From assembly GCA_946965045.2 (NCBI GenBank), contig OX337237.1, positions 2,852,001 through 2,916,000 on the forward strand: 64,000 nucleotides of DNA, written 5' to 3'. Within the stretch, counting starts at the first letter, position 1. Each line of letters starts with the position of its first letter. The notes under the pieces are model-generated. The model saw only the letters and a list, made by a program, of their open reading frames with translations, did no database searches and had not been told where the DNA came from. Position numbers and translations under genes: made by a program. The DNA comes from Epithemia pelagica (Eukaryota; Protista; Bacillariophyta). Of this stretch, positions 74-39,696 are shown piece after piece.

Positions 74-662
74 ATGGTAAACTTTTCCGTTACTCTCATT
101 CATGAAAATCCATCAATAGAGCCGCAGAAACACATCAACATGCACTCCAGCTCAACAACCATCAAACGAACCAACCACGAAACAAAGAATGTGAGCATTC
201 CACGTGGAATTGGTGAGCTGACGGACCCTACCTCGCTTGACTTTCCAAATCAATGGTCTTGTGGAGCCAATATTTGAGGCAATATCGAACTTTACAAAAT
301 TGAATTTCGTGAGTTTCCGTTCCAACGTTAGGGCAACCAGTGGCAACGACTTTTCAGGTCTCATTCCTGATCACTTGCTCTCGGCCTTGAGGTTTCTGGA
401 TTTTTCAAAAAATCAAAGGCTGGAGGGTATCATTTCAACCTTGGTTGGGAACCTTCCCGTTTTCACTGTCTTCTACGCCTGTCGCACCATCCGGACAGGC
501 GCCATACGTCTGTCTCTGTGTGGGTCGGCAGAGGGGAGGTCTAGTTTGGTCGTTGTGGATTGCGAAAAAGTGGCGTGCCCGTGTTGCTTGTATTGCTGTC
601 TAGCGTTTGGGGATTGTCCTGGCTTTGACTTTATCAAACTGGAGTACATTACTTACTTCTGA
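74..662 (+). pseudogene. Degenerate 3' end of an LRR receptor gene (last LRRs plus Cys-rich C-terminal cap); 5' part lies left of the window
   Basis: Frames 74..277 and 237..662 give GIGELTDPTSLDF, NFTKLNFVSFRSN, LRFLDFSKNQRLEGII and VVDCEKVACPCCLYCC, the same cap as the other LRR genes here; needs frameshifts to join. Confidence 0.65.
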
Positions 663-1142
663 ACCTTTTGTGAGCGGCAGAAGGAAACCAAAAGGGTCAG
701 AGGTAACAACTACCACAGGTCCCAATGGTCGAGCCATGACACACAAAAGAACCTACTGGGCAAGAGAACCACACACACCACATCATACAACAGCCGTATA
801 GTTCTCAAAACATGCAAACTGCTCTGGACTAGAAAATCTTGGAAGCATATAGTCCTCAATCTCTTGATCTGTCTTGATATGTATTGAAAATTTGCTCTGC
901 TTTTCAATTCCCATCTTTTGTGTTGCGCGGAAAAAGCGTCACCGCGCGTACGCGTACCGCCAAGGGTGCCGTATACGCGCCCGCAGGCCCAGCACACAAA
1001 ACGCAATGCGCCAGTCGCTGTTGAATCACCGATATTATGGAAGTTGCGGTTTGCAGTCCTCTTCATCATCAATCTTCATCCCTGTCTACACGTCGATGAT
1101 GCGACGTTATTGTCAATAGCGTCGTCGATTCCGCATACCGCT

Positions 1143-4100
1143 ATGGAAAACACTCCAGATGACGAGGAACCGTCCCTTGCCCTTGAGGAGCAAATCCCCG
1201 AACATGCGGATTGTGAGTCTTTGACGGCGGCCAACTTTCTTCGTGCCATGGATTCCAACGACCCAGATGTATTGTCGAACTTTGTGTTTCTTTCCAAACA
1301 TGATCCACGGCCGGATTATAAAGGCGAAGATTGTTTCATGTCGCACAGAGGACCCGACACCAAGCGAGATTATGTTGTTCCACTGGCAAAGACATTACGA
1401 GAACTCTACGAGTTCAAGATTTTTGTAGACTGCGAACCAGTCAATGAACTTTCACGGAACGCACTGGATCTTGATAAGGGCGAGGTGATTCGGCACTCGT
1501 TATGGAAATGCCGTGTGGTTCTCGTCTTTTTGTCTCGTGATTTTCATAACTCGAAATGGTGTTTGTTGGAATTGTACACCGCATTGTATCGTCAACGAAT
1601 GGATCTTGAGAACAAAGACTTTGTTCTTCGAATCATATTTTGTGATGATATGGATCCTGACAAGTGCAACGAGATGCCTGCTTACGCTGGGTTGGATCTG
1701 GGTGGAAAACTTTGGGGTTCTTTCGGAGCCGTATACCTATCTGGAAGACTTTGCCGTGGGTTTGCATCCCATTGTACGAGAGATAATTTCGACGGATGAA
1801 GCTTCTCCTCGTTCTCCGGCATCTGAAAAAGAGTTTTTTACGAAATGGCGCCGTCACTGTCCACTCAAAGCTCAGTCCAATAATCTGAAGAATGTGAATC
1901 CCCTCCACCGGAAGCTCCTAATTCTTGGTTTTATGTTACTACTTGGCGGAATTGTGGTGGCGGCTGTGATGTTACCGGACGATCCGACTCCGTTGCCGCC
2001 AACGTTTCCGCCCAGTCCCCCCCCCCCCCCCCACATTGGACCCCAGAACGCAGTCTATCCTCTCTCTAATTCAATCCAAGACTCTGTCCAATGGATCTCC
2101 TCATCGCTATCCAACATCTTCTGTTTCGTCAACAACCTTGGAAGAACAGGCATTGGAGTGGGTAATGGATGACGATCCGGCACAATTGGAAGCGGATTCC
2201 CCGATGGATCAACATCGAATTCTACAACGTTATGCGTTGGCAACACTTTGGTTTCTAGAACGAACTACTGCCGACGACGAGTGGGGCAATGCCTCGGATC
2301 CATCCAACACCACGGGGGGACTGCAAAATTGGTTGTCGGATGCACATGAATGCGAATGGCACATGGTCCTTTGTGAGGAAAAAGGTTTCGATGCCACCAA
2401 GGAAAGCGCCCTTGTGATACGTGGGCTGTCCCTCCATGACCAAGGGTTCCGAGGTCGACCGTCGAACGATCTAGCCCTCTTGTCCCATTTGACAATGCTC
2501 GAGTTATCCGGGAATGAATTGTCGGGACCCTTTCCCTCGGGTATCACGGAACTGACGGCCTTGACGGCCTTGCGATTAAACGGAAATGCCTTGGTTGGTC
2601 CCATTCCCAAGGAAATTGGACGCTTGACGAATTTGCAAATTCTCAATCTCCGTGTCAACGACTTTTTGAATGGGACCATTCCAACCACGGTCGGTCAACT
2701 CACGGAACTCGATACTTTGGATCTGTCCTTCAACCACCTCTCGGGCCCAATTCCTCCAGAAATTTCACGCTTGACAAACCTGATGAGTCTTATTCTACGG
2801 AATAACAGCTTGACAAACACCATTCCAGAAGACATTGTTCAATTGAGCATGCTGCGAACCTTGGATGTTTCATCCAACAATCTCGTGGGTCAATTTCTGG
2901 TCGAGGGAGTGTCCAGTAATGTAGGGCTTTTGCCCATGCTTCGTTCGCTCTAGCTCTCTTTCAACGAATTCTCTGGTCCATTTCCATCGGTCATTACTCA
3001 AATGGTCACATTGACTGATTTACGACTGGATAGTAATGCCTTTACCGGTCCCTTTCCCAATGAGATTGGACAATTGATAAATTTGGAATTTCTCGATCTT
3101 GGGGAAAACTTTTTCAATGGTACCATTCCAACGAATATCGGTGCACTCGCCCAGCTGACAGCATTGCGTCTTTTCGCAAATCAACTTTCCAGCAACATTC
3201 CTTCTTCCATATCTGCGCTGACGAAACTCAAGTTCTTGGACTTTTCTTTCAACAAGATGAGCGGCGACATTCCAAGTACCATCGGTCAATTGAGTCAGCT
3301 TGTATCTCTGAATATAACAAACAACAATCTACGTGGCCCTATTCCTGATGCGATCGCAGACTTGACGAATCTGACTTTGTTGTCCTTGGATACCAACGGT
3401 TTGACGGGTGCGATTCCCAATGGCGTGGGGCAACTAGCCCAATTGACGTATTTGTCACTTCATTCCAATCAACTTGTCGGATCAATCCCCAACGAAATTG
3501 CAAGCTTGACGAATCTGATTCATTTGAGCTTTGACACAAAGAGTTTGGATGGCAAAAATGGTTTGACAGGTTCTATTCCAACTGGTATTGGTGAACTGAC
3601 TCATTTGACTCATTTGGCGTTTAATGGCAACAGTCTTTCGGGACCTATCCCAGACGAGATTGCAAGTTTGACAAACCTTTCTTGGCTGACTTTTTCCAGA
3701 AATGGTTTGAATGGGACTGGGGAACTCAGCCAGTTAGACTATGTGTCGTTCCATTTCAATCGTCTTTCAGGTCCGATTCCCGACGAAATTGGAAGCTTGA
3801 CAAATCTCGTCTCCCTTCTCTTCATTAGCAATCGTTTGAGCGGCACTATTCCGACCGAGGTTGCAAAACTCACCAACCTGGAGCTTCTCAGTATGAGAGA
3901 TAATCAACTCAGTGGATCTATTCCAAGTGACATTGGTGAACTGAGCCAACTCACATACTTGAATGTGAAATATAATGATTTGAGTAGTCCTATTCCGGGT
4001 GGTATTTCCCTCTTGACCAATTTGGAAACTCTGGACATGAGCATCAATCCTCGTCTGGACGGTACCATTCCGAGCTCGATTACAGACCTGCCTCGTTTGG

Positions 4101-4279
4101 CGTGCTTCTTATCCTATCGTACCAATTTAACAGGATCCATGCCACACTGCAGTGGTGTCGGTCAGAGCAGCTCTGTGTTTCTGGTGACGGATTGTGACAC
4201 TGTACTTTGTCCTTGTTGCACGAATTGTTGTCCAACTGCGTTGAATGGAATTCCTCAATACCCAAATTGCCAAGAGTAG
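1143..4279 (+). pseudogene. TIR-TM-LRR receptor (type II, reversed Toll-like order), interrupted in this assembly by two frameshifts and one in-frame TAG
   Basis: ATG 1143; TIR DCFMSHRGPDTKR...IFVD...VLVFLSRDFHNSKWCLLELY; frameshift near 1730; TM KLLILGFMLLLGGIVVAAVML (~1912-1974); C16 run 2017-2032 shifts frame; ORFs 2036..2953 and 3002..4279 share a frame with TAG 2951-2953 inside an LRR; ~20+ plant-type LxxLxLxxNxLxGxIP repeats; cap TDCDTVLCPCCTNCC. Confidence 0.85.
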
Positions 4280-5271
4280 CAGAAGATTACTGAATACCAC
4301 AATGCGTTTCCCTTGGAGCAAAGAGGATTCGCGTTGGGGGAGTTGCACGGAACTAATTTCATCGCACCACTCTTTCTACGAATGGTGTTTCATGTTGGGC
4401 ATTTTGGACTGAAACCAAGCCATTTTTGGCAAACGACACTCTTGGATTGGGAGCACAGATCGATCAAACTGTCATTCTTCCATCAAACCGACCGCTGTTT
4501 GTTGTGGCAGTGGATTCATGGTCGATTGTATCGCGACGAAACGATACATATGGTTGCTTGGTTGAAACTGGAAACAGATTTGAGGGTTCCTGTGGACATG
4601 GAACTGCGTGAGGGGACTGACGGTGATGGAGCACACAAAAGCTCATGTGGATGTCCCCCCATTTCTCGGCATTTGTCGGCGCCCAACACATTGCAAGGCG
4701 GATCCCACAGCAAAGGCTGCTGCGGTGGCAAGATTTCACAACTAACAACAAACGCAAAGGCGACCACATTGGATACTACTACATGTACAATCTTCTCGAT
4801 GGACGGCTGAAAGGCCCAAGGCGACCACATTGGATACTATCGAGGGGGCGTGTTTGGGACGACTGTCAACCGAGATTCATACACGAGGCGATTCCTCGGT
4901 TTTGGTCTCCCTCTATTCGTTGTTCCGACTCATTCCACACAGCCCTATAGCTAGACGACGATGACTGGCGGTTGTATTAGTGGCATGGCTTTTGTTCCCT
5001 CACCAAACATCTGTGTTCGTTCGACAAATCGGTGCGGAGGATAGGATATCTAGATTGATCGACTGAATTGGTTGCTACTCTCCTCTCTTGCACACAGAAA
5101 GGTCGCTGCAACTTCCGGTAATGGAATCAAAACGTACGAAATCTTTCTACTACTCAGAGTATTGTCACGATAAAACATCCTTTTTCATATTGCATTATCA
5201 CACAGCAATAGCTCTGATATGATCATATTAGATACAGATTCTTTCGATATGAGGCAAGCATCCCAAGTCAC

Positions 5272-5362
5272 GGATGTCGGAGGATATTGCAGATGTCGGA
5301 TGATGTCGGATGATGTCGGATGATGTCGGATGATGTCGGATGATGTCGGAGGATGTCGGATG
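5272..5362. repeat. Left subterminal array of 10-bp GGATGATGTC units
   Basis: About 8 near-perfect tandem units seen directly. Confidence 0.9.
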
Positions 5363-5929
5363 TTTTTATCGCCAACAGAAGCTCTACTCTCCAGCACTTG
5401 GTAGTCTTCAACAGAAAACACACGACTGATTGACGGTAGGCCCATGGCGAAAGACATTTCAAAAGGCCCAAAAGGTATTGTTTGAAAAGACATTTCAAAA
5501 GGCCCATAACATATTTGTTGAAAGGACACTTCATATCACGCCCATCACGCGATCTTATTTTTAAAAGACACAATCAATGCCGTATTTTGCAATGACTCTC
5601 TACTACCGGTACGAGTACGAGTAGGTGTTGGGGATATGGGGATGAGATCGCGCCCTACAGACTGTCATAGATGAAAAGACCCCAGACCTATACCTAGCCA
5701 CATGACCGCTCTTTTTTTACGATGAGTATGCGCAATGTGCACGATGAGAGCAGCAGAGGAGAGGAGAGGCCTACACACTGCACAAACCTAGGTAGAAGAG
5801 GGCAAGTCTTTCTGATAAGTGCTGCACCCAAGCCAATGGTAACTAGTAGCACACCAATCCGATGCCCATCTATGACTCGGAGACAATGAACACCGGTAAA
5901 TTCATTACTTCTTATTCTTGTTATTGATG

Positions 5930-6880
5930 CTACCTCAGTTTGCTCAACCTGTCCTCTTTTTGTTTACGATTCCAGTTTATCTGTTTGGCAGTTCGCATTT
6001 CCTGATAAATGTGCTCACGAAAGACTTTGAGAGGAAAGTCTTGGTACACATCACGTGACAGCCATAGAACCTTGGGCTTGATGCTTTGTGGCTCCTCATC
6101 ATTCCTGATTTTGACACCCTGTGATGCGAGGAAAGCAAGATCACGGAGAAGTATTTGTTTTGCAAAAGAGTGCTGCCATTTTGGATACTGAATCCAATGG
6201 CCGTGAATGTCAATTCGTTGCGCGTTCATCTTTGACTGATACCTTGATTGTATCATGTGATGTTGCAGTGCTTTTGCATGTTCATCTGATTTCACTTGGA
6301 CTTTGTAAATTCGCTCACGCATACGTTTGAGGTTATTTGCAAAATCTGAGTAAAGCTTAAAACGTTCGTCGAATGCCATCATTTCTTCAGTGGAAAGCTC
6401 AACACCTTCCTCATCGCGGTCAAAACCAGCTTCAATCAATTCTTGTAAGTGTTCTTTTGCCAAACTCTTTCTCCATGCAGGAGCCACAGGATTTGCCAAT
6501 CGAGCCTCTTTTAATCTCGTTGTGAAGAGTTTCATTGGGATCCTTTTGAAGAGTGCATGAGAATCTCTGATATCCTTTGCTGACCGTTGGCGTCCATCTT
6601 TGCGGTCCTCTCGATCCTTAACGAACAAGTCCAATAGAACATCACCCATACAAGCTTCCCATTCTACCTCAAATGCAGCATCAAGTTTAGATAGGAAATA
6701 TTTCAATGGCACTGTTTGGAATCTCATGTCAAGCTTTCGGATTTGATGAGCAGTTTTTGCTTGGCCGTTGGCATCGAGATGGAGGCTGTCCCTTAGTATT
6801 TTTCTCATGACCGACTCTGCTCCACCAGCAGCCCAAATCTCGCTATGTTCATCTCTTCTATGCACAGGTAGAGTACTCAT
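5930..6880 (-). CDS. Transposon accessory protein with repeated helical (Myb/HTH-like) modules, probable DNA-binding partner
   Basis: ATG at 6880 (the listed 6955 start is TTG); internal repeats WRKSLAKEHLQELI / WQHSFAKQILLRDL and FQTVPLKYF / FKRIPMKLF / YQDFPLKVF; Harbinger elements typically carry a Myb-like partner. Confidence 0.6.
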   Translation of the reverse strand: MSTLPVHRRDEHSEIWAAGGAESVMRKILRDSLHLDANGQAKTAHQIRKLDMRFQTVPLKYFLSKLDAAFEVEWEACMGDVLLDLFVKDREDRKDGRQRSAKDIRDSHALFKRIPMKLFTTRLKEARLANPVAPAWRKSLAKEHLQELIEAGFDRDEEGVELSTEEMMAFDERFKLYSDFANNLKRMRERIYKVQVKSDEHAKALQHHMIQSRYQSKMNAQRIDIHGHWIQYPKWQHSFAKQILLRDLAFLASQGVKIRNDEEPQSIKPKVLWLSRDVYQDFPLKVFREHIYQEMRTAKQINWNRKQKEDRLSKLR

Positions 6881-7096
6881 AACTTTATGCCATTTCGTCT
6901 TGTTGACATAAAGGAACAGAACAACACACCACGAGCAAGCAACAACAGGCTTCAAAGTTCACATGTACGATTTGATTCAGCGATCTGTAATCTTGGTTCG
7001 TATTTTTGAGCAAGATTGACTTTGCCATCCCCGACTAGTCGCCAAATCCACACAATCGAAAAACACAAGTGGTGAAACAGTCTCACAATCACTTGC

Positions 7097-8299
7097 ATGG
7101 TGGGGAAACCTCCTACACTCAATTTTGAGCAGCGACAACTAATTCTAAAACACATTGAAAAACATCCAGAAAAAGGACTGACAGAGTTGTTCGCTGATCA
7201 AAGTCTCCGACCTCTGCTCCCCAGAACTAAGACAGAACGCTCAGCTTTCTCTCAATATCGTTGTCGTCGTCTCAGAGACAGGAAATCTCCACTGTTGTCT
7301 GCTCAACGAAAATACGTGCAAACCTGCCTTGAACATAAGGTGTTGATCAACACAGAGAACCTCCGCTTACGTACAATCGAGTCAGAGCTTGAACACCTCA
7401 ATATGTCAATGCTGGAATCAAAAGATGAAGAATACTACAACAAGTTGTTGAATGCACGCAAGAAACCTACGGCTCTACCAATGAAGAGTACGGAAAGTAA
7501 TCCGTTTTCATCTTCGATTGCGGGTGATACTGAGGAAAGCAACAATTTGGGCAAGAAGATAGTACTCCATCTTCATGGAGGACTGATTTTTGTTCTTCTC
7601 TGGATTGATGCGAAGGTAGATGCTGGATCCTATGAACTAAAGATCTGTGATGATGGATATGGGGTGATTGAACGCAAGAAGAAACCTGCCCCATCAAGTG
7701 CACGAGAGCTGATTGAAGGATTGTATCCGTCATGGGCGCACAACGAGACAAACTTTGTTGTCAAAGCCTTGAATGAGGAGATTAGCCGCCAAGCGCCAGA
7801 GCCAAATGAGTGGGAAGAGCAAACAATCATTGTTTTTCAAGAAGAGGTCATGCGTGATTTCTATGATATGGAAGGAAACACGGTCTCAACTGGACGTTAT
7901 TATCAAAGTGAAGATGGACGACAAATGCTTTCATTCTTTCTACAGACAGTTGCTTCACAGAAGAAGCAAACAGAAGCAGTTGTCTTTGAGATGGCAGCTA
8001 ATTCTGGATTGTCTGTTGATTTGGATATGGATGACCATGTGACCGTTTCCAACTCAGAGCTTCTGGAGGAGGTCGATGCACGCATGATGGCACAGGCAGC
8101 TCGATTGGTTAGGCAAGCAGAAGAGTCCGAACAGAGAATGAAGGACCAAATGGCTCAACAGATGAACATGCTTTCTCAAATGATGACGCAACAAATGGGT
8201 GAGCAGTTTGCCAAACTGCAGATGAATTCACAGCAGCAGCAGCATCTTTATCCGGACAATTCTTCCCCTGTCTTTCCCGACCAGGCTGGGTCATCGTGA
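7097..8299 (+). CDS. Hypothetical 400-aa protein inside the Harbinger-like element
   Basis: Clean ATG ORF with basic N-terminus and Q/M-rich coiled-coil C-terminus; divergent from 5930..6880 and convergent with the transposase. Confidence 0.6.
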   Translation: MVGKPPTLNFEQRQLILKHIEKHPEKGLTELFADQSLRPLLPRTKTERSAFSQYRCRRLRDRKSPLLSAQRKYVQTCLEHKVLINTENLRLRTIESELEHLNMSMLESKDEEYYNKLLNARKKPTALPMKSTESNPFSSSIAGDTEESNNLGKKIVLHLHGGLIFVLLWIDAKVDAGSYELKICDDGYGVIERKKKPAPSSARELIEGLYPSWAHNETNFVVKALNEEISRQAPEPNEWEEQTIIVFQEEVMRDFYDMEGNTVSTGRYYQSEDGRQMLSFFLQTVASQKKQTEAVVFEMAANSGLSVDLDMDDHVTVSNSELLEEVDARMMAQAARLVRQAEESEQRMKDQMAQQMNMLSQMMTQQMGEQFAKLQMNSQQQQHLYPDNSSPVFPDQAGSS

Positions 8300-8390
8300 A
8301 ACGAGATGGGCAGTAGGTCAGCGATGCCTCCCGATTCAATGATTGAACTTGGAAATGAGATCAACAACAGTATTCAATACTTACAATCTT

Positions 8391-8637
8391 TGTGAAAGTG
8401 ATAAAGCTTGCATGTTCCCTAAATACCAGACTAGTAGTACTATTCCTTTTCTTATATGAGAGTTACGGTTCATAGAGAGGAAAACCGTTTTCCATGCACT
8501 TTTTGAATCGATCACCGCTTACAGGCCCACCCTTGTGCCAAAATGTCTCCTTGAGCACACCAAAGCTTTTCAATCTTCCGTCGTAGTGTTCAATATGAGC
8601 ACGATATTTATGTTTGAAGGTCTTCTCCTCATCTTTG
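8391..8637 (-). repeat. Degenerate tandem duplicate of the transposase 3' end and 3' flank
   Basis: TTGTGAAAGTGATAAAGC...CCCTAAATACCAGACTAGTAGTACTA...GAGAGTTACGGTTCATA recurs at ~8391 and ~8637; ORF 8463..8654 repeats RAHIEHYDGRLKSFG...ENGFPLYEP. Confidence 0.85.
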
Positions 8638-8707
8638 TGAAAGTGATAAAGCATGCATGTTCCCTAAATACCAGACTAGTAGTACTAGTCCTATTCTTAT
8701 ATGAGAG

Positions 8708-9766
8708 TTACGGTTCATAAAGAGGAAAACCGTTTTCCAATGAAAGAAATACAATCACATTTATGGCATGCATAACAATCTTATGCTTTTCGAATCGATC
8801 ACCGCTTACAGGCCCACCCTTGTGCCGAAATGTCTCCTTGAGCGCACCAAAGCTTTTCAATCTTCCATTGTAGTGTTCAATACGAGCACGATGTTTACGT
8901 TTGAAGGCCTTTTCCTCATAAGTCTCGAACTTGTTGGCTGTGATGACTTCTTCCACACCTTGATACCCCAGGTCTCCTAGAAGGTATCTCCCTTGCGGCA
9001 CTCTACCTTTTAGACCTTCCTCATTGTACACCTTTGTGTCATTCTTCCCGGCCTTAAACGGACCATTAACCCAAATTGGTTTACCAGTCAAATCAAGCAC
9101 AATTTCCCATGCAAAACCAGCTTTGTTCAATTTGTGACTCTTCATTCCTTTGTCAAAGGGAAACTCAGGGTGTTGGACACGGGGCTCATAGCTGCCTGCA
9201 TGCAAGCCATCAACTACACCAATAATGAGATCTTCTCCCATTTCGGCAACAGTTGGAAAAATGATAAGCACATCAAACAAGGTCCCAATGGTTCTTGCGT
9301 AGTACATGCACCATTTCCGAACTGTCTTATCAGAGAGATTGAATCTCCCAGCGAGTTCAGCCTCTTTGCTGTAGCATTTCAGCCAATTAAGACACATGAA
9401 AAAGTGTCGGAGGCTGCGAACAGAATCAATCTCCCGAATTTGCCACCATAACACCGCATAGACAAGAGGATGCACACCATAGGATGCCCGAAACCATGTT
9501 ACAAGTTGGGCAAAACAGTTTTGGCGCTGTCGTTCATCAAAACCAACAAGCATCAAACCTATTTGAAGGATATCTGTTATGGAGAGGTTGTCGATCTCCA
9601 TGGCCATTCTGGTTTCTTGGCAGTAGCATGTTCGAATCTCATCGTCAAGAAGTCTTGGATAGATCCCAGATCGCAGGTTGCAGAAGTCTTGGATCGCTGA
9701 ATCAACTGAATGAGCACCGCTGGAAATTGAAACAAACCATGTTTCCGCGCGAGCCCGAAACGACAT
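8708..9766 (-). CDS. PIF/Harbinger-type DDE transposase (DDE_Tnp_4/HARBI1-like)
   Basis: IIGVVDG, KSHKLNKAGFAWEI, VNGPFKAGKNDTK, LGDLGYQG, RARIEHYNGRLKSFGAL motifs; N-terminal helix-turn-helix-like segment LAGRFNLSDKTVRKW. Confidence 0.85.
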   Translation of the reverse strand: MSFRARAETWFVSISSGAHSVDSAIQDFCNLRSGIYPRLLDDEIRTCYCQETRMAMEIDNLSITDILQIGLMLVGFDERQRQNCFAQLVTWFRASYGVHPLVYAVLWWQIREIDSVRSLRHFFMCLNWLKCYSKEAELAGRFNLSDKTVRKWCMYYARTIGTLFDVLIIFPTVAEMGEDLIIGVVDGLHAGSYEPRVQHPEFPFDKGMKSHKLNKAGFAWEIVLDLTGKPIWVNGPFKAGKNDTKVYNEEGLKGRVPQGRYLLGDLGYQGVEEVITANKFETYEEKAFKRKHRARIEHYNGRLKSFGALKETFRHKGGPVSGDRFEKHKIVMHAINVIVFLSLENGFPLYEP

Positions 9767-9840
9767 CAAACGACATCAAACGACATCAAACAACATCAAA
9801 CGACATCCCTCACGACATCAAACGACATCCCTCACGACAT
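9758..9840. repeat. Right subterminal array of 10-bp AACGACATCA units
   Basis: Tandem units whose reverse complement shares GATGTCG with the left array. Confidence 0.9.
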
Positions 9841-10447
9841 TCCCGTTTGTTCCATACTAGAGATTGGGAAACCATACTCTATTGTTTCATAATACGTATT
9901 TTGTATTAATATCGATCCTTTGTCGAAGAAGTTCTTGGTCTTGTCCTCTGGGTATTGCTAGCGGATATGGGACTCACGGGTAGTTACCGGAAGTTGCTGT
10001 CTTGTCGACAGGGGCTTTTCTTTCGTCGGGATGCGATGCACTCTTGGCCGTACTCTCTAACTAAGATCTCCGGTACATAGCACAAAGAGTGTCCATAGCT
10101 TTTTAACAACGATCCATCTCCACGGACAACAACAATTCTGGGGGACCGACACTTTCCATCGGGTGTGAATGAATATCAATTATGTAAAACTCATTCTTGT
10201 AAGCACTCCATTTCAATGGGGTGTGGTACAACCAACAGAAAGGATTCTTCTTTTGTTGTGTCAGTAGACAGATCTTTTTGGCGCTACTGTGACAGTTGAC
10301 CATGATGCTCTGAGACGAGGACCGCATCATCATTCCTAAAACAGAAACAACAGACACTGCCAGATTATCCCCGCGAGACAAACGAGAAGATCCTCCCGTG
10401 CTGATCGTTGCTGCGAAAGACACCACTGCCTCCAGATCGAGAGGACA

Positions 10448-22751: not shown

Positions 22752-25700
22752 TTAGTATTCTTTCAATTTGCCACTACTCTTGACTCCGTCAGTACTACTG
22801 ACTTGTTCCTGTAGAATTCCCCCCTCTGTTGGTGCATCCAGGACAATAGGCTGTCCTTTCGCATCAGTGACCGGACCATGTACGATATCACATTCTTCTT
22901 CCTCCTCCTCATACCATTGACGAGGTTCCAAGAATTCCCACTTTTCCAATTCCTCTAAATCACGGGTGTCTTGTTCCGACCAACCTGGTTGTTTCAGGGC
23001 CAGTTGTTTGGCTTCCTCGGTTAGAAACTTACAATACTCAACACTCCCACCTGAATCTCGTACCCAGTTTGTCCATTCCACTAGTTCGTCATCTTCCACA
23101 GTATTCAAGTCGTTCATGATCTCGTCGTATTCGTATCCGCACATAAACACCATCCTTCTCTGAAGCCAGCGAGCCATTGGCTCGAGACGACTCCTTTTCC
23201 CCTGCCCTTGATTAGTAGCACCGCCGCGTTGGGTTCTGGAAAAGTAAAAGCGCTTGAATAAGCTATTGAAAGCTACCGTCATTGTAAATGGTTAGACACC
23301 AAAGAGACATGGGCGATCACGGTCGATCCACTCACCTTCCCATCCTTGTTGGGCATGTGAACTGAGATTCCGCCAATGCAGAAGATACTCAGTCACATGC
23401 CCACTGCCTATCATATGCGCATAGTTTGTGATTCCTCCTTCACCATGCAAGTCAACCCATCTCGAAAAAAACTCGTCCGCAACACGTTGATATTCGTAGA
23501 TTTCCTCATCTGTCATTTCGTTCTTATTGTTCACGAGCTTCATAGACTTGGCATAATATTCAACACTTTCGATCCATGTCTTTCGTCTGTTCTCCTCTGG
23601 GCAACACAGATCAATCAGAGTCTTGAATCCATTCACTATCCGTCGGATTCGGACATTATCCATGCAGATCGTTGTTATTGCCTTTGCTTTCTCGTCGTAC
23701 GGCATTTTCCATTGCGTCGGGAATTCCTCAGAACCAAGAACAAGAGTATTAAGATTCCTGTTGACTGTATCTTGAAACTCTTCTATCCTCGCGTCCATGC
23801 CCCCCTCAGCTTCTTTATTGATCCAACTAAGCTCATCGCTCTTCGTATACTCCAGGCCTTCTCGGAGAATCATTGTTAGTAGCTTCAAGCCCATTCGGTT
23901 CTCGATATGAAGGATGCAAGGGATTGCATCCATCATATAAACCAAGGCCGTTGTCTTTTTTGAGTCCTTGAATTGATCCTTGACTCTCTGTGCTTGATGA
24001 TACCACCACTCCTTGACGTGTGATGATTTTAGCCGTTTCTGTCGATCCTCCAAAGAACCCGAGATATCGAGGCCTCTAGCAGTCAAATCATTCGTCAAAA
24101 TCTTTGCGTATTCTCTCCGTTGCTCTAAAGAGGCCACACTCAAGTCGAAATGAACACTTTGCAAACTCCCTTTCTCCATTCCCGACGCGACACATCTAGG
24201 ATCTTGCTGTATAATGACTTGCGATTTAGCCCAGATCGATTTCATCGTCTTCGCTATGATAGGCATCTCCTTGATGAATTCAGCTATATCCTCCTCAACT
24301 TGTTGGATGTGTTCTTTAGAACAGATCTTGTGGTGTCGACAGATCCAGTTCTTTCTCTCGTCGTTGCCTAGCTTAACACAGATCTTGCATTCGGAAGCCG
24401 GTTGTGTCTCGGCATGTAACTCACCACTTCGAACGACACATTTAGAACAAGGGTAGGTAACTTGTTGAGCTGCCCCACCTCGGCCGAACAGTTTCCATTC
24501 ACAGCTCATGTCGCAGTTTGTGGAAATAGTGAGTTGTAAAATCCCAAATTTCGTGGGAAGTACAATCTTCGCCCCTTCCTTGATCTCTACCATCATCATC
24601 CGGAACAGAGACCTGACCAATGACTCTGACTCTTTCTGACACACGCATAAGATCGGGAACACGCTGTGCCGTGATTGGCCCAGTAGATTGCAGATGTCGT
24701 TGAATTTCAGTCCACCCAGAACATGTCCGAGGTTCTTTGTAAACAAAGCCCCGTCCAAGCTCTGTGATAGGTAGATTGATCGTTCCTTGGCTTCTCCGCC
24801 CATCAAATTACCTGCCACCAGGATTGCTGCCATAACATCCGCCGCACGAAACGTGAAGCCTTCTGCTCCTGTTTCTTTGTTCCGTAGCATTCTGTAAGGG
24901 CATAGTAGGGCCCCGAATCTGTTCACCTCTGCCGCGCAGTTTTGCATGCAAGAGGTGCTTGGCAGTAGAGTCTGTTGATACAGCACTCCGTCAGTTTCTA
25001 CGGATCGAAGATACTCCAACCCGCGGAAGTTTAGTGGTCCTCCCGCCAAGTCCATCGCGCGTAGGATCTTGTACGGCGTAAAAACATTTTCTCTAACGTA
25101 CTTGCGGAACACATTGTAGGTGGCTTTGAACAATTGCCCGCCGTGTATTGTCTTGTCGAGTAGCAAAGACCCGATGTCCGTAAAAAAAGATGCTGCTTGA
25201 CGACTTGTTGTGTCCATCTTTGATACCTTGGAAGTGATGAACTTGCGTAGGTAAGTCAGCAGAGTCGTCTTATCTTCTGGGTCGTAACATGACTTTGGTA
25301 GTTTGTCCGTTTCATTCTTCTCCTGTTGTGCTAGCTTTGCTTCGCGGAGCTCCTCTCGAGTTTCCTTGACGATTTTTTCCCAATACCGAAGCCTCTCACT
25401 TTTCTTCTTGGACTGCAGACGACAGTCCTTCAGCTTCGAAAGCATCGAGGTGAGTTTTTCTTTGAGGTGAACAACTTGTTTAATTAACTTCTCACGCTCT
25501 CTATCCTCTATTGTGTTGTCCTCGTGTGGACAATCTTCCTCTTGCATGTTCATTTCAGTTGCCCTCAGCCATTCGTCAAGGTCAGTTTCGTCATCGTCCT
25601 CTTCTTCGTCATTTACCACTGTCTCTACGATTGGGCTACTGTGAACGGATTCTCTTGATTCCGGTGTCATTCCAATGCCTGTATTGGGTTCGGCATTGGG

Positions 25701-26882
25701 TTCTGTCCTTGAAGACTTTGTGTCGTTCTTCTTCGTGTCGTTGGAGGTAACCGTCGTTTCGTCCATGTTGACTGGATTACTTGGCGGATTTGTTGATTTA
25801 GGAGGATCATCCTCTACTGTGGTGTTGGTGGATGAAGGGAAGGGGGGTACTGGATCGACTGAAGCTGGTTCTGGAGCTTGTTCGGCAATCTCGGGAAGAG
25901 TTTTGTCCTTGTCCAAGTCTCTGACATTCTCAGTTGAGGCAGGTAATTGCTTGTCACGCTTGGCTCGTCGGATTTTGGTCCGTTTGATAGGCTCGGGTTC
26001 TTCAATAGGCTGACAAAATAATTCAGCCGGAGGCGGTTCGGGTACGTATTGAGAATTCTTGTGTCGGAAGGTTGGGCTCCACATGTTGGTGTGTTCTGCT
26101 GTGCATTTATAGCGGCCGCCGACGATGGTCCGATTAATATAATGGCCAGGCCGTGAACCCTGTTCTCGATCAGCCTTGTCGCAGTTGTTACAAAAGAAGT
26201 AACCCCTGTGTGCCTGTTCTCGGTCGCGACCGTAAACCGAGCACGGTACAAATTCTGATGTAAGGAACGTCTTACAGATTTCTGCAATTCTTTTTCGCTC
26301 TACAGAGTTGGATTTGCATGGAACTTCAGATGCACGTCTTCGTGCTCGAGTTTGCATGTTTGGCGACGCTTGAAGTTTTAAATCTCTCTCGATCTGTTGG
26401 ATTTCTTCGGGAGATGGTTGGCGACAACCGTCGGGTTCGTCACTGGTTGAAGTGGAGCTGGTAGTCTGGCAAAGCTGACAGGGTGCTTCGTCAGTCAACT
26501 GTTTTGCAGGACTGGTTACTGGATGATGGTCTTCATTATTGGGCGACTCTTGGAGATCGACAACGCCATCAATCTGCAAGTTTTCTTCTTGAGATGATGG
26601 ACGAAGTCCATTTGGTTCAACACTTGTTGGGGCCAATCCGGCAATTCGGCGAGATTTGCGAGATGGTTCTGCAATCGGAGGGTTAAGCGATGCTTTGGGA
26701 ATAATGTCTCTCCCAATCTGCTGACGGTTTTCTTGAGGTAATGGGCAAGGTCCATCGAATTCGACACTTGTTGCTGCCAGTCCGGCAATCCGGCGAGATT
26801 TTCGAGATGGTTCTCCAACCGGAGGGACTTCTGAAGTGTGATGGGCCTGGTTTGGGCGCTTCTTCGATGCACGGGTAGGCAT
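22752..26882 (-). CDS. RAG1/Transib-like DDE transposase, ~1355 aa, two exons (intron 23273..23335)
   Basis: Ordered RAG1-core-like motifs SLDG, PILCVCQKES, TNCDM, YPCSKC, CILHIENRMG, MDNVRIRRIV, ITNYAHMIGSGH, QQGWE; a 63-bp GTGAGT...CTAAC...TAG intron joins GWE to AFNSLFKRFYFSRTQRGG in ORF 22752..23282; spliced length 4068 nt. Confidence 0.8.
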
Positions 26883-27929
26883 AGTGTATGTAAGATGAGA
26901 TAAAGCCGCTGTTATTGTGAAATACAAGTCGTTATCTCATGGTCATACCTCCAGGGTCCATGTTGGAGGGAGGTTGGTCGGCAGGTGGTAGATGAGATCA
27001 AAGTACGATTAATAGGCGACTACTATGTTAAATATCATACAATGCCGGATATATTTTATACTCAAGACTGGGGTGGCGCGCATTGGGCTAGGGGAGGGGC
27101 CTGGAAAACCAATGAATGAACAAGGCCGCTGTATTGTCGTCCGTATAACTTTACGAATATTTGCTACTATTGTCAAGTAAGTATACCGTTGGATTCTTGA
27201 GACAAAAAGGAATCAGATGCAAGTGTTACCTGACAATTGTAGCCATTAATGGGTGAGTGGTAGTGCGTTGAAAATGGGTCAGTCTTTTGAGGCCTAAAAT
27301 TGGGTCTTATATTTAACAAAAATTCATCCATACAATGCAAAAACACTCCACGATGACGGCGAGATCCGTTGATGCCGCATGCATTCACTCATGCATCGCA
27401 TCAACATCCGACTACTGTGAGTTGTTTGAGTTTGCTAGTATTACTGTGTTCTACAGCTACGGAAGATTTGTCGCGTTGGATCAAAAGTTATACTCATTTT
27501 TCTGTGGTGATGTAGTCCAAAAACCTTCCTAACTCATTCATTTCTCAACGGTGACTGAATCAAATTGAAACCATAGTTGCTCTAGTATTAAAGAGTATTA
27601 TTCTAAAAGTGATTCAGTTAGGCTCAATTATCCATGAAGTTATTGCCATGGGGGTGATTTCTTCGACCATTGTCGAGTGATGGTTTCCGGATTGCATTGT
27701 TTCTCGTGGCAGCAAGTTTTCGATTTGCGACTCGGTGTGACCATCCGCCCCACTTGTTACAGTCATGAAAATAGTACTACGTAGCTTAATGTACTGAGCC
27801 TACTTAGCCGAACATGGATCGGCTTACCCAGCCCTTACTAGGGGTGCTCGTATTGGAGTCCTTTCAAGGAGGGACCGCCCGGCGAGGAGGGTAGAATGAC
27901 GAGGAGGGCAATGGTCGAGGAGGGCGCAT

Positions 27930-28515: not shown

Positions 28516-28740
28516 TCATATTACTTTGGAAAAAACATATAAGGTATTACTGACTCCTATTTCGTCAAACCACATCACACTCGGAAGGAAGCCATGGTAC
28601 GACCGGAATATCCCCAAAAGCGGGACAGCAATAATCGCAACATGGACAAACCACCGTGTCACAATCCGCAACAACACTGTTGTATGTCCTACCAACTGCC
28701 CCCCAAAGCGGCATCTCACCAGTCAAGTTCAAAATTGGTC
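28516..28740 (-). pseudogene. Spare, out-of-frame copy of the LRR C-terminal cap downstream of the receptor gene
   Basis: NLTGEMPLWGAVGRTYNSVVADCDTVVCPCCDYCCPAFGDIPVVP duplicates NLTGDMPLCDAVGRTYTNIVADCEMLVCTCCTSCC. Confidence 0.8.
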
Positions 28741-31493
28741 GCAATGTAGCCTTTGGGATGGGTATCCTGTGGGTTTCCCATAGCACCTTTCAAGCATCGA
28801 TCGAACCTGGTATCGTGATCGTTGTCAAAAAATGACGGAAACGTGCGACATTCGGAAGATTCAGGAAGAGACAAATATTCTGAACTCAAATACTCAGGAC
28901 AGCAACTTGTGCAACAAGTACAAACCAACATTTCACAATCAGCAACAATGTTGGTATAAGTTCTCCCAACTGCGTCACAGAGAGGCATGTCACCAGTCAG
29001 GTTGGTGTAAGGGACAGATAAACGTTTTAGGAACCGTAGTATGGCGAGAGAACCTGGTACGATGCCTTCCAACCTTGGATTCCTCGCCATAGTCAGAGTC
29101 GTCAGCGATACCATGTTTGAAATTTCATGAGGAATTGGACCTGATAGATCATTGGCCGAAAAATCCAGAAAACTCAGTCGCTTGAGTAGTCCAAAGTCAG
29201 TTGGAATGGTACCGTTCAATTGATTGGCCTCCAAAAGCAAAGTCTTGATGTTCGACAAACCTGAAACTTCGTCGGGGATGGGTCCCGAAAGATCGTTGGA
29301 ATGCAAACTCAGAAAGTTCAGTTGATTCAGATGTCCAATCTCAGTTGGAATTGTTCCCCAGAGAGCATCTTCCGAAAAACTCAACCAGACCAGTTGAGTC
29401 AGCTGACCGATGGTGGGAGGAATTGTTCCTGAAACATCGTTGTCATAGAAACTCAACCAGGTAAGTTGATTTAATTGTCCATAATCATTTGAGATGGTTC
29501 CGTTAAGTTGATTCCTCCCAAAATTCAGGCGTTTCAAGTTAGTGAATGTTACTTTGTCAGGGATAGGTCCTGAAAGATTGTTCTCATAAAAACTCAGCCA
29601 GGTCAGTTGATTCAGTTGTCCAAACTCAGATGGAATGGTGCCGCTGAATTGATTCTCCCCAAAGTCCAAAAGTAGGATGTTGGACAAATTCGAAACTTCG
29701 TCGGGGATAGGGCCTGAAAGATCGTTGTGATAAAAACTCGGCCAAGTCAGTTGATTCAGTTGTCCAAACTCAGAGGGGATGGTGCCGTTGAATTGATTCT
29801 CCCCCAACTGCAAACTTTCGAGGTTGGACAAATTTGAAACTTCGCCGGGGATAGGTCCTGAAAGATCGTTGTTATCAAAACTCAGCCAGGTCAGTTGATC
29901 CAGTTGTCCAAACTCAGATGGAATGGTGCCGTTGAATAAATTATCCCCAAAGTCCAAAGTTCGGATGTTGGACAAGTTTGAAACTTCGTCGGGGATAGGG
30001 CCTGTAAGATCATTGTTATAAAAATTCAGCCATGTCAGTTGATATAGGTTTGACAAAAAATATGGCACAGTTCCGGACAAGCCGTTGTCGCCTAAATCCA
30101 AGAGCAATAGTCGAGATAGGAGTCCCAGATCATTCGACGGCCGCCCTAGGATATTCTTGCCCCTAGCACGTAGCCTAACAACACGCAGAATCGTAGACTC
30201 TGTAGCATCGTCGTTCTTTGTAAAAGCCTCTTCTTGACACGAGACCATGGACCAGTCACACTCGTGGGCATCAGACAGCCAGTCGATCCGAGCATCCTCT
30301 CTCCATTTTTTTGGAACGGTATCTTGTAAGAACCATAATGTCGCTAGGGCGTATCGTTGCACCAATCGCTGTTGATCCAACTCAGTCTCTACTCCAAGTT
30401 GCGCTGGGTCGCCATCCAGGATCCAGGCCAAGGCCTTTTCCTCCAATGTTGCAGAACCTTTGGGCGCTGGAAAACGTAGGGGAGAAGGGGACGACGAAAG
30501 TGTCAGATTCCGCAGAAAAGATATTATATTCGCGGTGCGTGGATAGTTGGTCGGAGCCATAGATTGCGTGGGAGGATGGCTGGGTATAGTCGACGGATTC
30601 GAAGAGGGACCTCCAGTGGGTTGTGGCGAGATAGGTTTCTTTGACGGTTCCCAAGAAAAAACTATAGTGGGTTTTGGCAACATAATATCTCCTTCAGAAG
30701 GAGATATTGAAGGGGGAGATTGGAAGTTGCCATTCAACGCTGACGAAGTCGACGATTTGTTATCTCTTTGGTTCGTCAGAACAGGAACAACTGTCGCTAC
30801 AAGAATGATAGCCAACAATGCAATGAAAGCAACAGCAAAAGCATTCAAATGCCATCTATGGCGTGACTTGAACAAACCAACATCAATGCACAATCCGTTG
30901 TAAGTGTCATTATTGTTCAAGGTTTTGATGGAGGCCTCAAGATCCCTTTGCATGGCGCACTCAACCTGGTGATCATTCTTCTCTTCGTTCGACGAGACTT
31001 CCTCATCATAAACTGTGTCCTCCCACTTTCTTTCGTCCGGCTTCAGTGGACAATGGCCTCGCCAAATTGTCAAAAAGACATTGTTTTGTTCAGGTGTAGC
31101 GTTGTCACCAGACAGAAGTTGCCGTATCGTTGGATGAAGTGGATTGATGACAAACTGTTCGAGAGTCTGCCTGGGTCTGAACATGGTACAAAACTCTTTG
31201 CCTAAGTTCAAACTTTTATAAGCCGAGAGACTTTCACAAAGATGTGGATCCATGCCATCACAAAACACAATTCGAAGAATAAACCCCCCCTGTTCCGAAT
31301 CTCTTTTTCGGTACAACGCCGTATAAAGTTCTTTCAAACACCAGTCAGATTCGTGAAAGTATCTGGATAGAAATACAATGACAACCCGGCTCTTCCACAA
31401 GGCATGGCGAATCACATCTTCTTTGTCCAAATGGCCGAAGCCACGAGAATGCTCATTCATGGCTTCACAATCCACAAAGAACTTGTATCCATA
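28716..31493 (-). pseudogene. 3' part of a TIR-TIR-TM-LRR receptor (rest of TIR2, TM, stalk, ~15 LRRs, cap), cut off from its 5' part by a copia insertion
   Basis: YGYKFFVDCE...FLSRYFHESDWCLKELY; TM AFAVAFIALLAIILVATVVPVL (~30781-30846); LRRs in 48-aa units; joins 39697 through TSD CCATA. Confidence 0.9.
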
Positions 31494-32271
31494 TAGTAGA
31501 ATTCTTTCAAACTCATGGGGGATAATGCTCGGTAGAGCAGACAATCAGGTAGGTCACCAACCGATAGTAGTATCTCCACGGGTCAGAGATACAACCAAGT
31601 CGTAGTCTATCAAAAGGATAGTCGGGACACAAAAGAGGATGTGATAAATGGTGATATTGTTAGATTGTGTGTTGATTACTACGATAGGTCTACGTGAAAT
31701 TTTCGGTCCTGCCAAGGGTCATGAGTCATAGGTTCTTGGCGGCAACAGGTTTGGAATAGTTGGAGTCGATTCATGTGATGTATATGACATGTATATGTGG
31801 ACGGATAACATATACAGGGTCAACAGCTCTTGCTTTGGATTGGAATAGTTGTTTTCATGGCGCGCAGCTTGTTGACAATTTGGAGATTTTGGGAATGGAA
31901 ATATGGTCTCGCGTGATCGTGTGTCGTGCTTGGGATACTTAGACCGTTGGGACGGATAGATGCCAACAGCGCTCGGATGTCGCTTGGGCGCGCTCGATGA
32001 TTTCGGGCGCGTAGGCTTAGGGCGTTAGTATAATGTCCGAGCAACGGCCAAATTTACGTCCGTTGTAATACCGCACGACCCAGTTTAGTCTTGAGAGTGA
32101 GTTCGTCAATCTATTCTCCCTTTTCATGATTTGCGAAGAAATATAGGTCGATATAGCGCAAAGCTAGGGAACATAGCTCGGAGCCTAGATGGCATGATGC
32201 GATAGCACGAGGCTATGTGACATGGGGAATCGATGAGATGTAGAATCTAACCACCATAGACGGTGAGAATT

Positions 32272-37776: not shown

Positions 37777-38096
37777 GGTGTTATTTGGTTGGTTCGATGT
37801 TTATTTAATGTGCGGTATGATGTGGTTTATTTAATGTGTGATGTGATGTGAACCCGGATGTACCACGTGTGCCACGTATGTACCACGTATGTGATACCCG
37901 GATGTGTGTTGTGATGTGCGATTCCTGGAAATTTCCGTTGATTCCGACAAATTTTCGCCGAGTTTCAACAAATTTTCGCCGAATTTTTGCGATTTGGCGG
38001 GAATGTGTGGCGTGTTGTGCGACCAAGGGTACCCGGATGTGCGTTGAGTTTAAGTCTTGGAAAGGTTTTGAGAGGACGGGAGTTAACTATGAGTAA

Positions 38097-38876
38097 TTAA
38101 GCTTCGGTTTCCGATTCTCCACTCTCTGCCGAATAATCAGAGTCGTTTCCAGGCTCAGATGGGGCAGCACAAGCAACAGGAGAAGGGGTATTACCTTCAG
38201 CCAAGTGGTTCTCGGCCTCGGCACGCAAAGGGAAGATAGTTGCACGATGGTCCTCAATGGTATGGACCTCGTGGATGTAGGCAACGTAGTTATCTAGGCG
38301 TACAACGTTAGGAGGCAGAGGGCAAGTCGTCGTGTTCACGATGTAGATGGTATTGTAGTATCCAGTTGGGCGCTCGAAGGTTAGGAAGCGGAGGTGGACA
38401 GTACGGATAGGGTTGCCCGAGAGGGCGGCCAAGATGAGGCGATACCTCGGAGAGCGATGAAGTTGGTCGTTCAGACGTTCAATGTCTTCTTGGTCGACGA
38501 TGTGGGTCACCGATTGGAACTGGCGTTCGATCTGGGTCTCCCCACGGATGATCTCGGGATCGAAGGTCGAAGAAGTTGGTTGACGGAAGTACTTGATATG
38601 ATCAGCAATCAACCGGGTGGTACGACGGGATCGAGAAGGGACGAGCCGACGAGGCGGACTCGGGGGCCGAAGCAACGGCGCAGGGATCGGAGCGTGAGGC
38701 TGGGTTGGAGTCTCGAATGGGTTGCTGTTGGAACTGTCGACGGAGATGTTGACCGATGTGTTGGCTGCCTTCAGCGTCGGCACCAGTTCCCGCTGCACCA
38801 GGGTATCGGGCTGCCTGGAATGCAGGTTGGCTCGATAAATCTGTTGTACAGGAGTGATAAGCTCGTTAGTATCCAT
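38097..38876 (-). CDS. Extra 259-aa ORF of the copia element between 5' LTR and gag (unknown function)
   Basis: Same length and frame as 42273..43052 in copy 2 despite many substitutions. Confidence 0.7.
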   Translation of the reverse strand: MDTNELITPVQQIYRANLHSRQPDTLVQRELVPTLKAANTSVNISVDSSNSNPFETPTQPHAPIPAPLLRPPSPPRRLVPSRSRRTTRLIADHIKYFRQPTSSTFDPEIIRGETQIERQFQSVTHIVDQEDIERLNDQLHRSPRYRLILAALSGNPIRTVHLRFLTFERPTGYYNTIYIVNTTTCPLPPNVVRLDNYVAYIHEVHTIEDHRATIFPLRAEAENHLAEGNTPSPVACAAPSEPGNDSDYSAESGESETEA

Positions 38877-39696
38877 GAAACCACAAGGAAATAAGCTCTG
38901 AGACTGTTAATCTAGTAGAATTCTTTCAAACTCATGGGGGATAATGCTTGGTAGAGCAGACAATCAGGTAGGTCACCAACCGATAGTAGTATCTCCACGG
39001 GTCAGAGATACAACCAAGTCGTAGTCTATCAAAAGGATAGTCGGGACACAAAAGAGGATGTGATAAATGGTGATATTGTTAGATTGTGTGTTGATTACTA
39101 CGATAGGTCTACGTGAAATTTTCGGTCCTGCCAAGGGTCATGTGTCATAGGTTCTTGGCGGCAACAGGTTTGGAATAGTTGGAGTCGATTCATGTGATGT
39201 ATATGACGTGTATATGTGGACGGATAACATATACAGGGTCAACAGCTCTTGCTTTGGATTGGCATAGTTGTTTTCATGGCGCGCAGCTTGTTGACAATTT
39301 GGAGATTGTGGGAATGGAAATATGGTCTCGCGTGATTGTGTGTCGTGCTTGGGATACTTAGACCGTTGGGTCGGATAGATGCCAACAGCGCTCGGATGTC
39401 GCTTGGGCGCGCTCGATGATTTCGGGCGCGTAGGCTTAGGGCGTTAGTATAATGTCCGAGCAACGGCCAAATTTACGTCCGTTGTAATACCGCACGACCC
39501 AGTTTAGTCTTGAGAGTGAGTTCGTCAATCTATTCTCACTTTTCATGATTTGCGAAGAAATATAGGTCGATATAGCGCAAAGCTAGGGAACATAGCTCGG
39601 AGCCTAGATGGCATGATGCGATAGCACGAGGCTATGTGACATGGGGAATCGATGAGATGTAGAATCTAACCACCATAGACGGTGAGAATTCTAACA

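Follow-up and report, generated by a model that had tools for sequence, protein, structure and literature searches.

The 64,000-nucleotide stretch analysed here (positions 2,852,001 to 2,916,000 of contig OX337237.1, assembly GCA_946965045.2, from the diatom Epithemia pelagica; hereafter the window) carries near its start a gene, copy 1, at 1143-4279 of the forward strand. Position 1143 is the first ATG past the upstream stop, and the stop codon lies at 4277-4279. The parts of copy 1 follow each other in the order TIR domain, one transmembrane (TM) helix, proline stalk, N-cap, about 22 leucine-rich repeats (LRRs) of plant type, and Cys-rich C-cap. The explanation that we favour overall, with a confidence somewhat better than even, is that copy 1 is a broken array allele of a family of type II TIR-TM-LRR receptors.

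Profile matches agree with this anatomy. The piece at 1143-1796 matches the Pfam families TIR (PF01582; 38.5 bits, E 1.3e-9, gathering score 21.3) and TIR_2 (PF13676; 29.7 bits, E 1e-6, gathering score 28), whereas LRR_14 (E 7e-43), LRR_8, and LRR_1 match strongly on 2036-2950 and 2954-4276. No piece of copy 1 gave a Pfam match to NB-ARC, and Pfam found no kinase in copy 1. A hydrophobic N-terminus is also absent, as checked on P0001, the 94% identical protein of the other allele. The TIR, TIR_2, and LRR matches bear out the HMMER check of Pfam that had been proposed in an earlier reading made from the letters alone (the original prediction), and every part named in it (TIR, SKWCLLEL with its Glu, HRK and TM helix, proline stalk, cap, LRRs, Cys cap) lies where it had been placed. 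The original prediction had taken 1143-4279 for one receptor; the domain order stands, but three reading frames and a TAG had been silently joined, and what lies here is a broken allele.

Copy 1 does not stand alone. A TLDc protein encoded in the window matches ctg1321l (775,818 bp) of ENA ERZ21939226, which makes the window part of that contig. There, three intact genes directly precede copy 1 in the same orientation: P0004 (1164 aa), an 870-aa gene, and P0172 (998 aa). Each is a single open reading frame (ORF) encoding TIR, TM, stalk, cap, LRRs, and Cys cap. With them copy 1 forms a head-to-tail array of intronless genes, in which it stands fourth. Continuous family ORFs of 870-1164 codons are found both on ctg1321l and on the sister haplotype. 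The TIR-single TM-LRR family is real: these intact ORFs, together with the relatives P0028 and P0135 described below, bear out the claim that the architecture belongs to a family and is not a one-off fusion.

Table 1. Coordinates of copy 1, copy 2, and family relics in the window
Feature	Positions	Strand	Basis
Copy 1, first reading frame: acidic N-terminus, N-terminal helix, TIR core up to the frameshift	1143-1706	+	Pfam; 94% identity to allele P0001
Copy 1, TIR motif DCFMSHRGPDTK	1329-1364	+	translation
Copy 1, SKWCLLEL motif	1551-1574	+	translation
Copy 1, GAA, the Glu of SKWCLLEL, at the catalytic-Glu position of plant TIRs	1569-1571	+	sequence; alignment to Roq1/RPV1
Copy 1, second reading frame: TIR C-terminal extension (WRRHCPLK), HRK, TM, start of Pro stalk	1708-2016	+	translation; alignment A1
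Copy 1, basic HRK directly ahead of the TM	1906-1914	+	sequence
Copy 1, single predicted TM helix, 20 residues	1915-1974	+	sequence; hydropathy scan of P0001 and paralogues
Copy 1, C16 homopolymer in the poly-Pro stalk, second frame change	2017-2032	+	alignment to L001; run contigs
Copy 1, LRR N-cap (RYALATLWF ... WLSDAHECEWHMVLC)	2138-2374	+	conserved in all paralogues
Copy 1, about 22 LRRs of plant-specific type, 24 residues each	2489-4138	+	Pfam LRR families; repeat listing
Copy 1, in-frame TAG inside an LRR	2951-2953	+	CAG in the other allele
Copy 1, Cys-rich C-cap (CxCCxxCC; CPCCTNCC)	4139-4276, stop 4277-4279	+	cap also in P0002, P0003, P0004, P0028, P0135
Copy 2, 5' part: TIR1 complete, TIR2 up to ...TELYG	39697-41000	-	translation
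Copy 2, 3' part, one 2.8-kb open frame: rest of TIR2 (from YKFF... at 31493), TM, Ser/Pro stalk, N-cap, LRRs, Cys cap	28716-31493	-	translation
Copy 2, SDWCLKEL	31326-31349	-	
Copy 2, TM helix	30777-30842	-	hydropathy
Copy 2, Cys cap	28899-28943	-	
Copia-type long terminal repeat (LTR) retrotransposon inside copy 2	31494-39696	-	gag, integrase, and reverse transcriptase ORFs; LTRs; target duplication
Relic of a family member: its final LRRs and Cys cap, nothing upstream	237-662	+	aligns to an intergenic part of L001
Relic or partial third family-like gene: stalk, N-cap, LRRs, and Cys cap over two ORFs	61072-62912	-	ORF translations

TIR domain, predicted topology, and relatives of the family

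A resemblance of the family TIR to those of plant TIR-NB-LRR proteins (TNLs) is supported both by sequence and by predicted fold. A profile built from the family alone found Roq1, L6, AtTIR, and RPP1 as its best matches in the PDB (E 1e-5 to 2e-4), with the TLR15/TLR2 entry (7ylf) at 1e-3, and a wider profile, which may itself include plant sequences, matched RPV1, Roq1, and RUN1 at E 1e-37, bacterial TIR NADases at about 1e-14, and Toll-like receptors (TLRs) at about 1e-8. In the hidden Markov model alignments, the Glu of SKWCLLEL pairs with that of WCLeEL in Roq1 and WCLdEL in RPV1, the residue that is catalytic in RUN1 (E100), L6, and Roq1. The Glu of WCxxEL is catalytic in NAD+-cleaving TIRs such as SARM1, plant TNLs, and bacterial Thoeris. 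Neither this Glu nor the Cys ahead of it varies within the family (6 of 6 sequences, alignment A1), and across a set of 45 TIRs the Glu is conserved in 90% or more. An AF2 model of P0001:25-256 (pLDDT 89, pTM 0.87) has the TIR fold. Its top Foldseek matches were RUN1, RPPT, L6, L7, and RPS4, followed by AbTir, SARM1/TIR-1, and MyD88, and the first 33 matches in the PDB list are all TIR domains (TM-score by target up to 0.74). The family TIR is larger than its core, with additional helices at the N-terminus and, at the C-terminus, about 60 further residues that end in W-R-x-H-C-P-L-K.

The other end of the protein resembles the extracellular part of plant receptors. The ectodomain has 24-residue repeats of the form LxxLxxLxLxxNxLSGxIP, a superhelical model, and an N-cap, as in plant-specific extracellular LRRs. 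The AF2 model of a paralogue ectodomain (pLDDT 83.6) matched ERL2, MIK2, GSO1, RGFR1, FLS2, and BRI1 in Foldseek at E 1e-21 to 1e-16 and 26-31% identity, and LRR receptor kinases (LRR-RKs) of plants are also the best named sequence matches (P0008, P0010). How these parts are placed across the membrane was judged on P0001-P0004 and copy 2 from hydropathy, charge, and sequons. All 5 proteins have one TM, lack an N-terminal hydrophobic segment, and show an excess of Lys and Arg on the N side. None of the 12 sequons of P0001 lies on that side, nearly all of those of copy 2 are C-terminal to the helix too, and so are the Cys-rich caps. These features fit a predicted N-in/C-out (type II) topology.

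Relatives of this TIR and its extension were sought by exhaustive profile search in 1.84 billion representative sequences, and only about 16 clusters fell below E 1e-26, among them proteins of this genome, P0028, and the soluble TIR-NB-ARC-TPR proteins named below. P0028 (ERR4592245), which stems from another study, consists of TIR, TM, an FG-GAP-like region, cap, LRRs, and Cys cap. Two weaker matches are P0135, a TIR-TM-LRR-Cys cap protein from a different sample, and P0144 (ERR4592243, from that other study too), in which the same N-terminal TIR and single TM are joined to DUF285 repeats as ectodomain. The contig that bears P0135 has no poly-A tail that we could find and is probably genomic. 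In P0009, P0019, and P0020 the TIR is missing, and an N-terminal tail is followed by a single TM and by LRRs. Beyond this genome, the TIR has its nearest relatives (E 1e-56 to 1e-41) in soluble TIR-NB-ARC-TPR proteins (P0024, P0027, P0029, P0030, P0031), one of which (P0031) comes from the diatom Entomoneis paludosa (MMETSP1065); they appear to form a diatom family of NLR-like proteins. A word-based search of proteins, for which the TIR part of P0001 served as query, returned that query alone, and searches of the ESM Atlas and of AFDB clusters gave generic TIR matches, nothing specific to diatoms. Because TIR-TM-LRR, FG-GAP, DUF285, and TIR-less forms coexist, we read the group as a modular type II plan with exchangeable heads and tails, which suggests that domains were shuffled, not that the group descends from TLRs or TNLs. 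The convergent origin that the original prediction had advanced is plausible; with the nearest TIRs in soluble TIR-NB-ARC-TPR proteins and with TIR-less type II LRR proteins at hand, shuffling is what the relatives point to.

How might intact members work? From their sequences and models, a mechanism can be proposed to which we give a little less than an even chance. It would involve 1) insertion of the signal-anchor helix N-in/C-out (type II), leaving the TIR cytosolic and the LRR domain extracellular; 2) binding, by the LRR domain, of a ligand outside the cell that could come from microbes, viruses, or another diatom; 3) gathering of receptors upon binding; 4) assembly, by the clustered TIRs, of a composite active site around the conserved Glu; and 5) cleavage of NAD+ (or nucleic acid) to a nucleotide signal, or depletion of NAD+, leading to defence or cell death.

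A different role for the TIR is improbable, but it is the strongest of the competing accounts: the domain would be a non-enzymatic scaffold, as in animal TLRs, that recruits cytosolic TIR-NB-ARC-TPR proteins by homotypic contact. The nearest TIRs outside the genome do belong to such proteins (P0024, P0027, P0029-P0031), and the fold matches include MyD88 and TLR TIRs as well. Yet the family shows no variation in the Glu and the WC(L)xEL motif that are typical of enzymatic plant TIRs, and enzymatic plant and bacterial TIRs far outscore those of TLRs (family profile, E 1e-5 against 1e-3; wider profile, 1e-37 against 1e-8). Somewhat less probable still is a function in surface recognition or adhesion between diatoms (mating type, kin, colony), with the TIR as a signalling tail. 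In diatoms, genes that are mating-type-biased or responsive to sex cues reportedly include LRR receptor-like ones (PMC6261938, PMC5485032), and the high allelic divergence and the birth and death of genes in the array fit recognition loci of either kind. Nothing specific counts against this function; the molecular mechanism would be common to it and to the enzymatic receptor outlined above.

Lesions of copy 1 and its second allele

The coding sense of copy 1 is spread over three frames and interrupted by the in-frame TAG. Its counterpart on the other haplotype, P0001, is an uninterrupted ORF of 999 residues that was found by protein search on contig ctg1359l of ENA ERZ21939226. The DNA of the two genes is 95% identical, and the locus of P0001 (L001) is syntenic with the window at 92-96% DNA identity. 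At the first frameshift, 1704-1707, copy 1 has one base more than L001, and frame 0 then stops at 1797-1799, while the coding sense goes on in frame 1; aligned base by base, the alleles differ at the 1707 site by a substitution plus an indel. The C16 tract is 7 bases longer than in L001 and coding moves there to frame 2, a change that may be a third lesion. Besides these differences, the comparison with L001 shows several in-frame indels, and the copy 1 LRR at 3717 has 5 residues (15 bases) fewer than in the other allele. Two observations accompany this comparison. The poly-C tract, of which the other allele has a much shorter version, reflects either homopolymer instability within a coding stalk or a sequencing problem. 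The DNA of ctg1321l and ctg1359l differs by 3-8%, with transposon insertions in addition, which indicates an unusually high heterozygosity or a hybrid genome.

The lesions were checked by aligning contigs of four public runs (X1-X4) to window positions 900-4500. Both alleles of copy 1 occur at about equal depth in the contigs of X2, X3, and X4, the form without the extra base at 1707 accounting for 64/136, 73/138, and 47/86 of the depth, respectively. A T at 2951 is present in contigs of X1, X2, and X4 that show no other difference, and a C in a contig of X3. The poly-C tract varies by source: the window has 16 C, an X2 contig 2 C more, an X3 contig 1 C more, and the X1 contigs break there. 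Because both alleles are present in the contigs of other runs, we regard the 1707 frameshift and the TAG as true features of a haplotype, a confirmation that is not fully independent in that X2 and X3 are possibly the source reads of the assembly itself.

Two other causes of the interrupted frame were considered and rejected. Introns do not account for the frame changes: no GT-AG introns fit, the 95% identical allele aligns colinearly and keeps its frame open at each of the three sites, and no joints were seen in the run contigs. Nor does an alternative genetic code account for the TAG, which is CAG in the other allele, and the gene closes with a normal stop.

With frame lesions set against the open frame of L001, and with both alleles found in X2-X4, copy 1 is very probably one, recently dead allele of the fourth gene of the array. 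Between the two alleles, dN/dS is 0.33 overall, 0.21 in the TIR, and 0.31 in the LRRs, with a dS of 0.09. These values imply that the gene stayed under purifying selection through most of the period after the two haplotypes diverged, and that the lesions are recent.

Run X1 bears on whether the broken allele is expressed. Its contigs total 40 Mb, the longest being 19.6 kb. They carry almost only the window allele, with zero differences, from 1094 (49 nt ahead of the ATG) to past 4500, with depth zero at 900-1020 and no joints seen. A highly covered X1 contig matches the N-cap region only over 2219-2256. The pattern resembles an intronless mRNA of the broken allele and gives a hint, and a hint only, that copy 1 is transcribed. 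If so, the broken allele might yield a soluble, TIR-only protein of 218 residues (1143-1799), similar to plant TIR-only proteins or acting as a decoy. Transcription seemingly from about 1094, and a frame that stays open from the ATG for 218 codons and includes the Glu motif, speak for such a product. It is nevertheless very unlikely: the frameshift comes ahead of the final strand and the final helix in the TIR model (E165-168 and H175-190 of P0001:25-256), which the window allele thereby loses, so the protein would miss C-terminal elements of the fold and end in 30 unrelated residues.

The least probable account of all is that the organism has an intact gene here and that the breaks arose in the assembly: of the three lesions, two do lie at or beside homopolymers, and the length of the poly-C tract is 16, 17, or 18 across sources, but the 1707 site combines a substitution with an indel and is no matter of run length alone, its two forms have about equal depth in three runs, and the TAG is a substitution that recurs in three of the runs.

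Copy 2, relics, and other elements of the window

A second gene of the family, copy 2 (28716-41000, reverse strand), encodes TIR-TIR-TM-LRR and is split by a Copia-type element of 8.2 kb. The LTRs of this element are about 785 nt long and 98.9% identical, and a 5-bp target duplication (CCATA) stands at 31489-31493 and 39697-39701. The original prediction had seen the architecture of copy 1 recur at 28716-41000; the recurrence of the family holds, whereas the architecture is a TIR-TIR-TM-LRR one and is split by the transposon. The window allele of copy 2 has no in-frame ATG upstream. The third family-like gene of Table 1, at 61072-62912, shows no TIR and no clear TM upstream.

The window contains further elements. 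A 4.9-kb insertion at 5108-9996 is not in the other haplotype (L001); inside it are a DDE_Tnp_4/PIF-Harbinger-like transposase ORF (8711-9769, reverse) and two ORFs without Pfam match (5933-6955, reverse, and 7097-8296, forward). An uninterrupted ORF of 1895 codons at 43347-49031 (forward) encodes a Copia-type reverse transcriptase (RVT_2) and may represent a second, possibly intact LTR retrotransposon. A 1095-codon ORF at 53089-56373 (forward) encodes a reverse transcriptase of the RVT_1 family, probably of a non-LTR or other retroelement. The forward strand has a strong negative GC skew and a positive AT skew over 50000-56400. Finally, an ORF of 1211 codons at 23295-26927 (reverse) has no Pfam match at E 0.001.

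The putative receptor family weighed and compared

A number of findings weigh against reading the locus as part of a functional receptor family. First, every family copy inside the window is damaged, as are the counterparts on the other haplotype. In P0001 itself, a stop after ...YRTN comes 50 codons early and the Cys cap is lost. In the other haplotype of copy 2 (L002), the Copia insertion site is empty and the gene is split into four ORFs. Because of the transposon split and the missing ATG in the window and the four ORFs in L002, we consider copy 2 dead in both haplotypes. The locus of copy 1 and copy 2 is partly decaying. Second, the motif is not without exceptions: P0002 has R in place of the W before the Cys, and P0026/P0170, a short TIR-only relative on other contigs of ERZ21939226, has QSLMQL for WCLxEL and has lost both Cys and Glu, the Glu of P0026 being replaced by Gln. 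Third, the BB-loop region of the TIR model is long and poorly predicted (pLDDT 59-77), and the Foldseek scores of the TIR are modest (E 3e-4, TM-score 0.5-0.67). Fourth, X1 is a run of unrecorded kind, and its sequences are contigs, not transcripts, that break at the poly-C tract. The original prediction would have fallen with a TIR placed outside the cell, with TIR and LRR parts transcribed as separate genes, or with a lack of intact TIR-TM-LRR transcripts in any diatom. None of these was found, the transcript side being weak given the nature of X1.

No parts of innate immunity have been reused more widely than TIR domains and LRR ectodomains. Animal TLRs combine them in the order LRR-TM-TIR, and plant TNLs are soluble TIR-NB-LRR proteins. 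Like TLRs, the family is predicted to be single-pass, with an extracellular LRR solenoid and a cytosolic TIR, and clustering is expected to be read by association of the TIRs. However, the order is reversed, with an N-terminal TIR, no signal peptide, and the TM as predicted signal anchor; the LRRs, 24 residues long and plant-specific in type, have caps like those of plants; and the TIR is much nearer to enzymatic TIRs of plants and bacteria than to those of TLRs. The likeness does not imply a common ancestry of the whole architecture with TLRs. Plant TNLs and TIR-only proteins (RUN1, L6, RPS4, Roq1, RPP1) share with the family an N-terminal TIR, a strand resembling FxSxRGxDTR (here FMSHRGPDTK), and SxWCLxEL with its Glu and Cys, and they are its best matches in sequence and fold. 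The family TIR differs from both by its extra N-terminal helices and C-terminal extension, and the family differs from TNLs by the absence of NB-ARC, by the TM between TIR and LRRs, and by LRRs of the extracellular-receptor rather than the NLR type. With plant LRR-RKs and receptor-like proteins (ERL2, MIK2, FLS2, BRI1), the family shares ectodomain fold and repeat type, but it is predicted to be type II and not type I, it has a TIR where those proteins have a kinase or short tail, and the distinctive CxCCxxCC cap is the free end of the chain. The family falls outside TLRs, TNLs, and LRR-RKs because it lacks, respectively, the domain order, the NB-ARC, and the type I topology with kinase that define them.

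Algae offer closer comparisons. The full-text literature searched contained no description of a TIR-TM-LRR architecture, the nearest being ectodomain-TM-TIR proteins of the haptophyte Gephyrocapsa huxleyi, which have been proposed as receptors in virus infection (PMC12489294). These too are membrane-anchored, Glu-bearing TIR proteins of a marine microalga, but their extracellular part comes first and the TIR last, and they have no LRR or NBS (PMC12489294). The TIR-NB-ARC-TPR proteins of diatoms and other stramenopiles have the same TIR subtype, including the extension (profile positions about 5-220); they and the brown-algal NB-ARC-TPR proteins (PMC3341825) are, in contrast, soluble STAND proteins with TPR sensors and neither TM nor LRR. 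A survey in 2010 described diatom LRR receptors without an attached functional domain (PMC2939053). A broader proposal, which we put forward tentatively and consider rather unlikely as a whole, is that diatoms, or a subgroup of them, possess a hitherto undescribed class of type II TIR receptors. In these, an enzymatically competent, plant-like cytosolic TIR would be combined with exchangeable ectodomains (LRR, FG-GAP with LRR, DUF285), and its subtype would be common with TIR-NB-ARC-TPR proteins. Surface and intracellular sensing might then converge on one NAD+-derived chemistry, independently of plant pattern-recognition receptors and TNLs and of animal TLRs.

The given locus is a dead allele only, and the significance of the finding rests on the family. 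If the receptor reading is true, major marine primary producers would have a third arrangement, in which a plant-type, probably enzymatic TIR stands directly behind a plant-type surface LRR domain, and the combination of TIR and LRR would have been invented more than once. The family would also provide a one-chain model for whether receptor clustering alone activates a TIR enzyme. To our knowledge, almost no receptors are known by which diatoms sense bacteria, viruses, parasites, or each other, and these genes would be candidates for such sensing.

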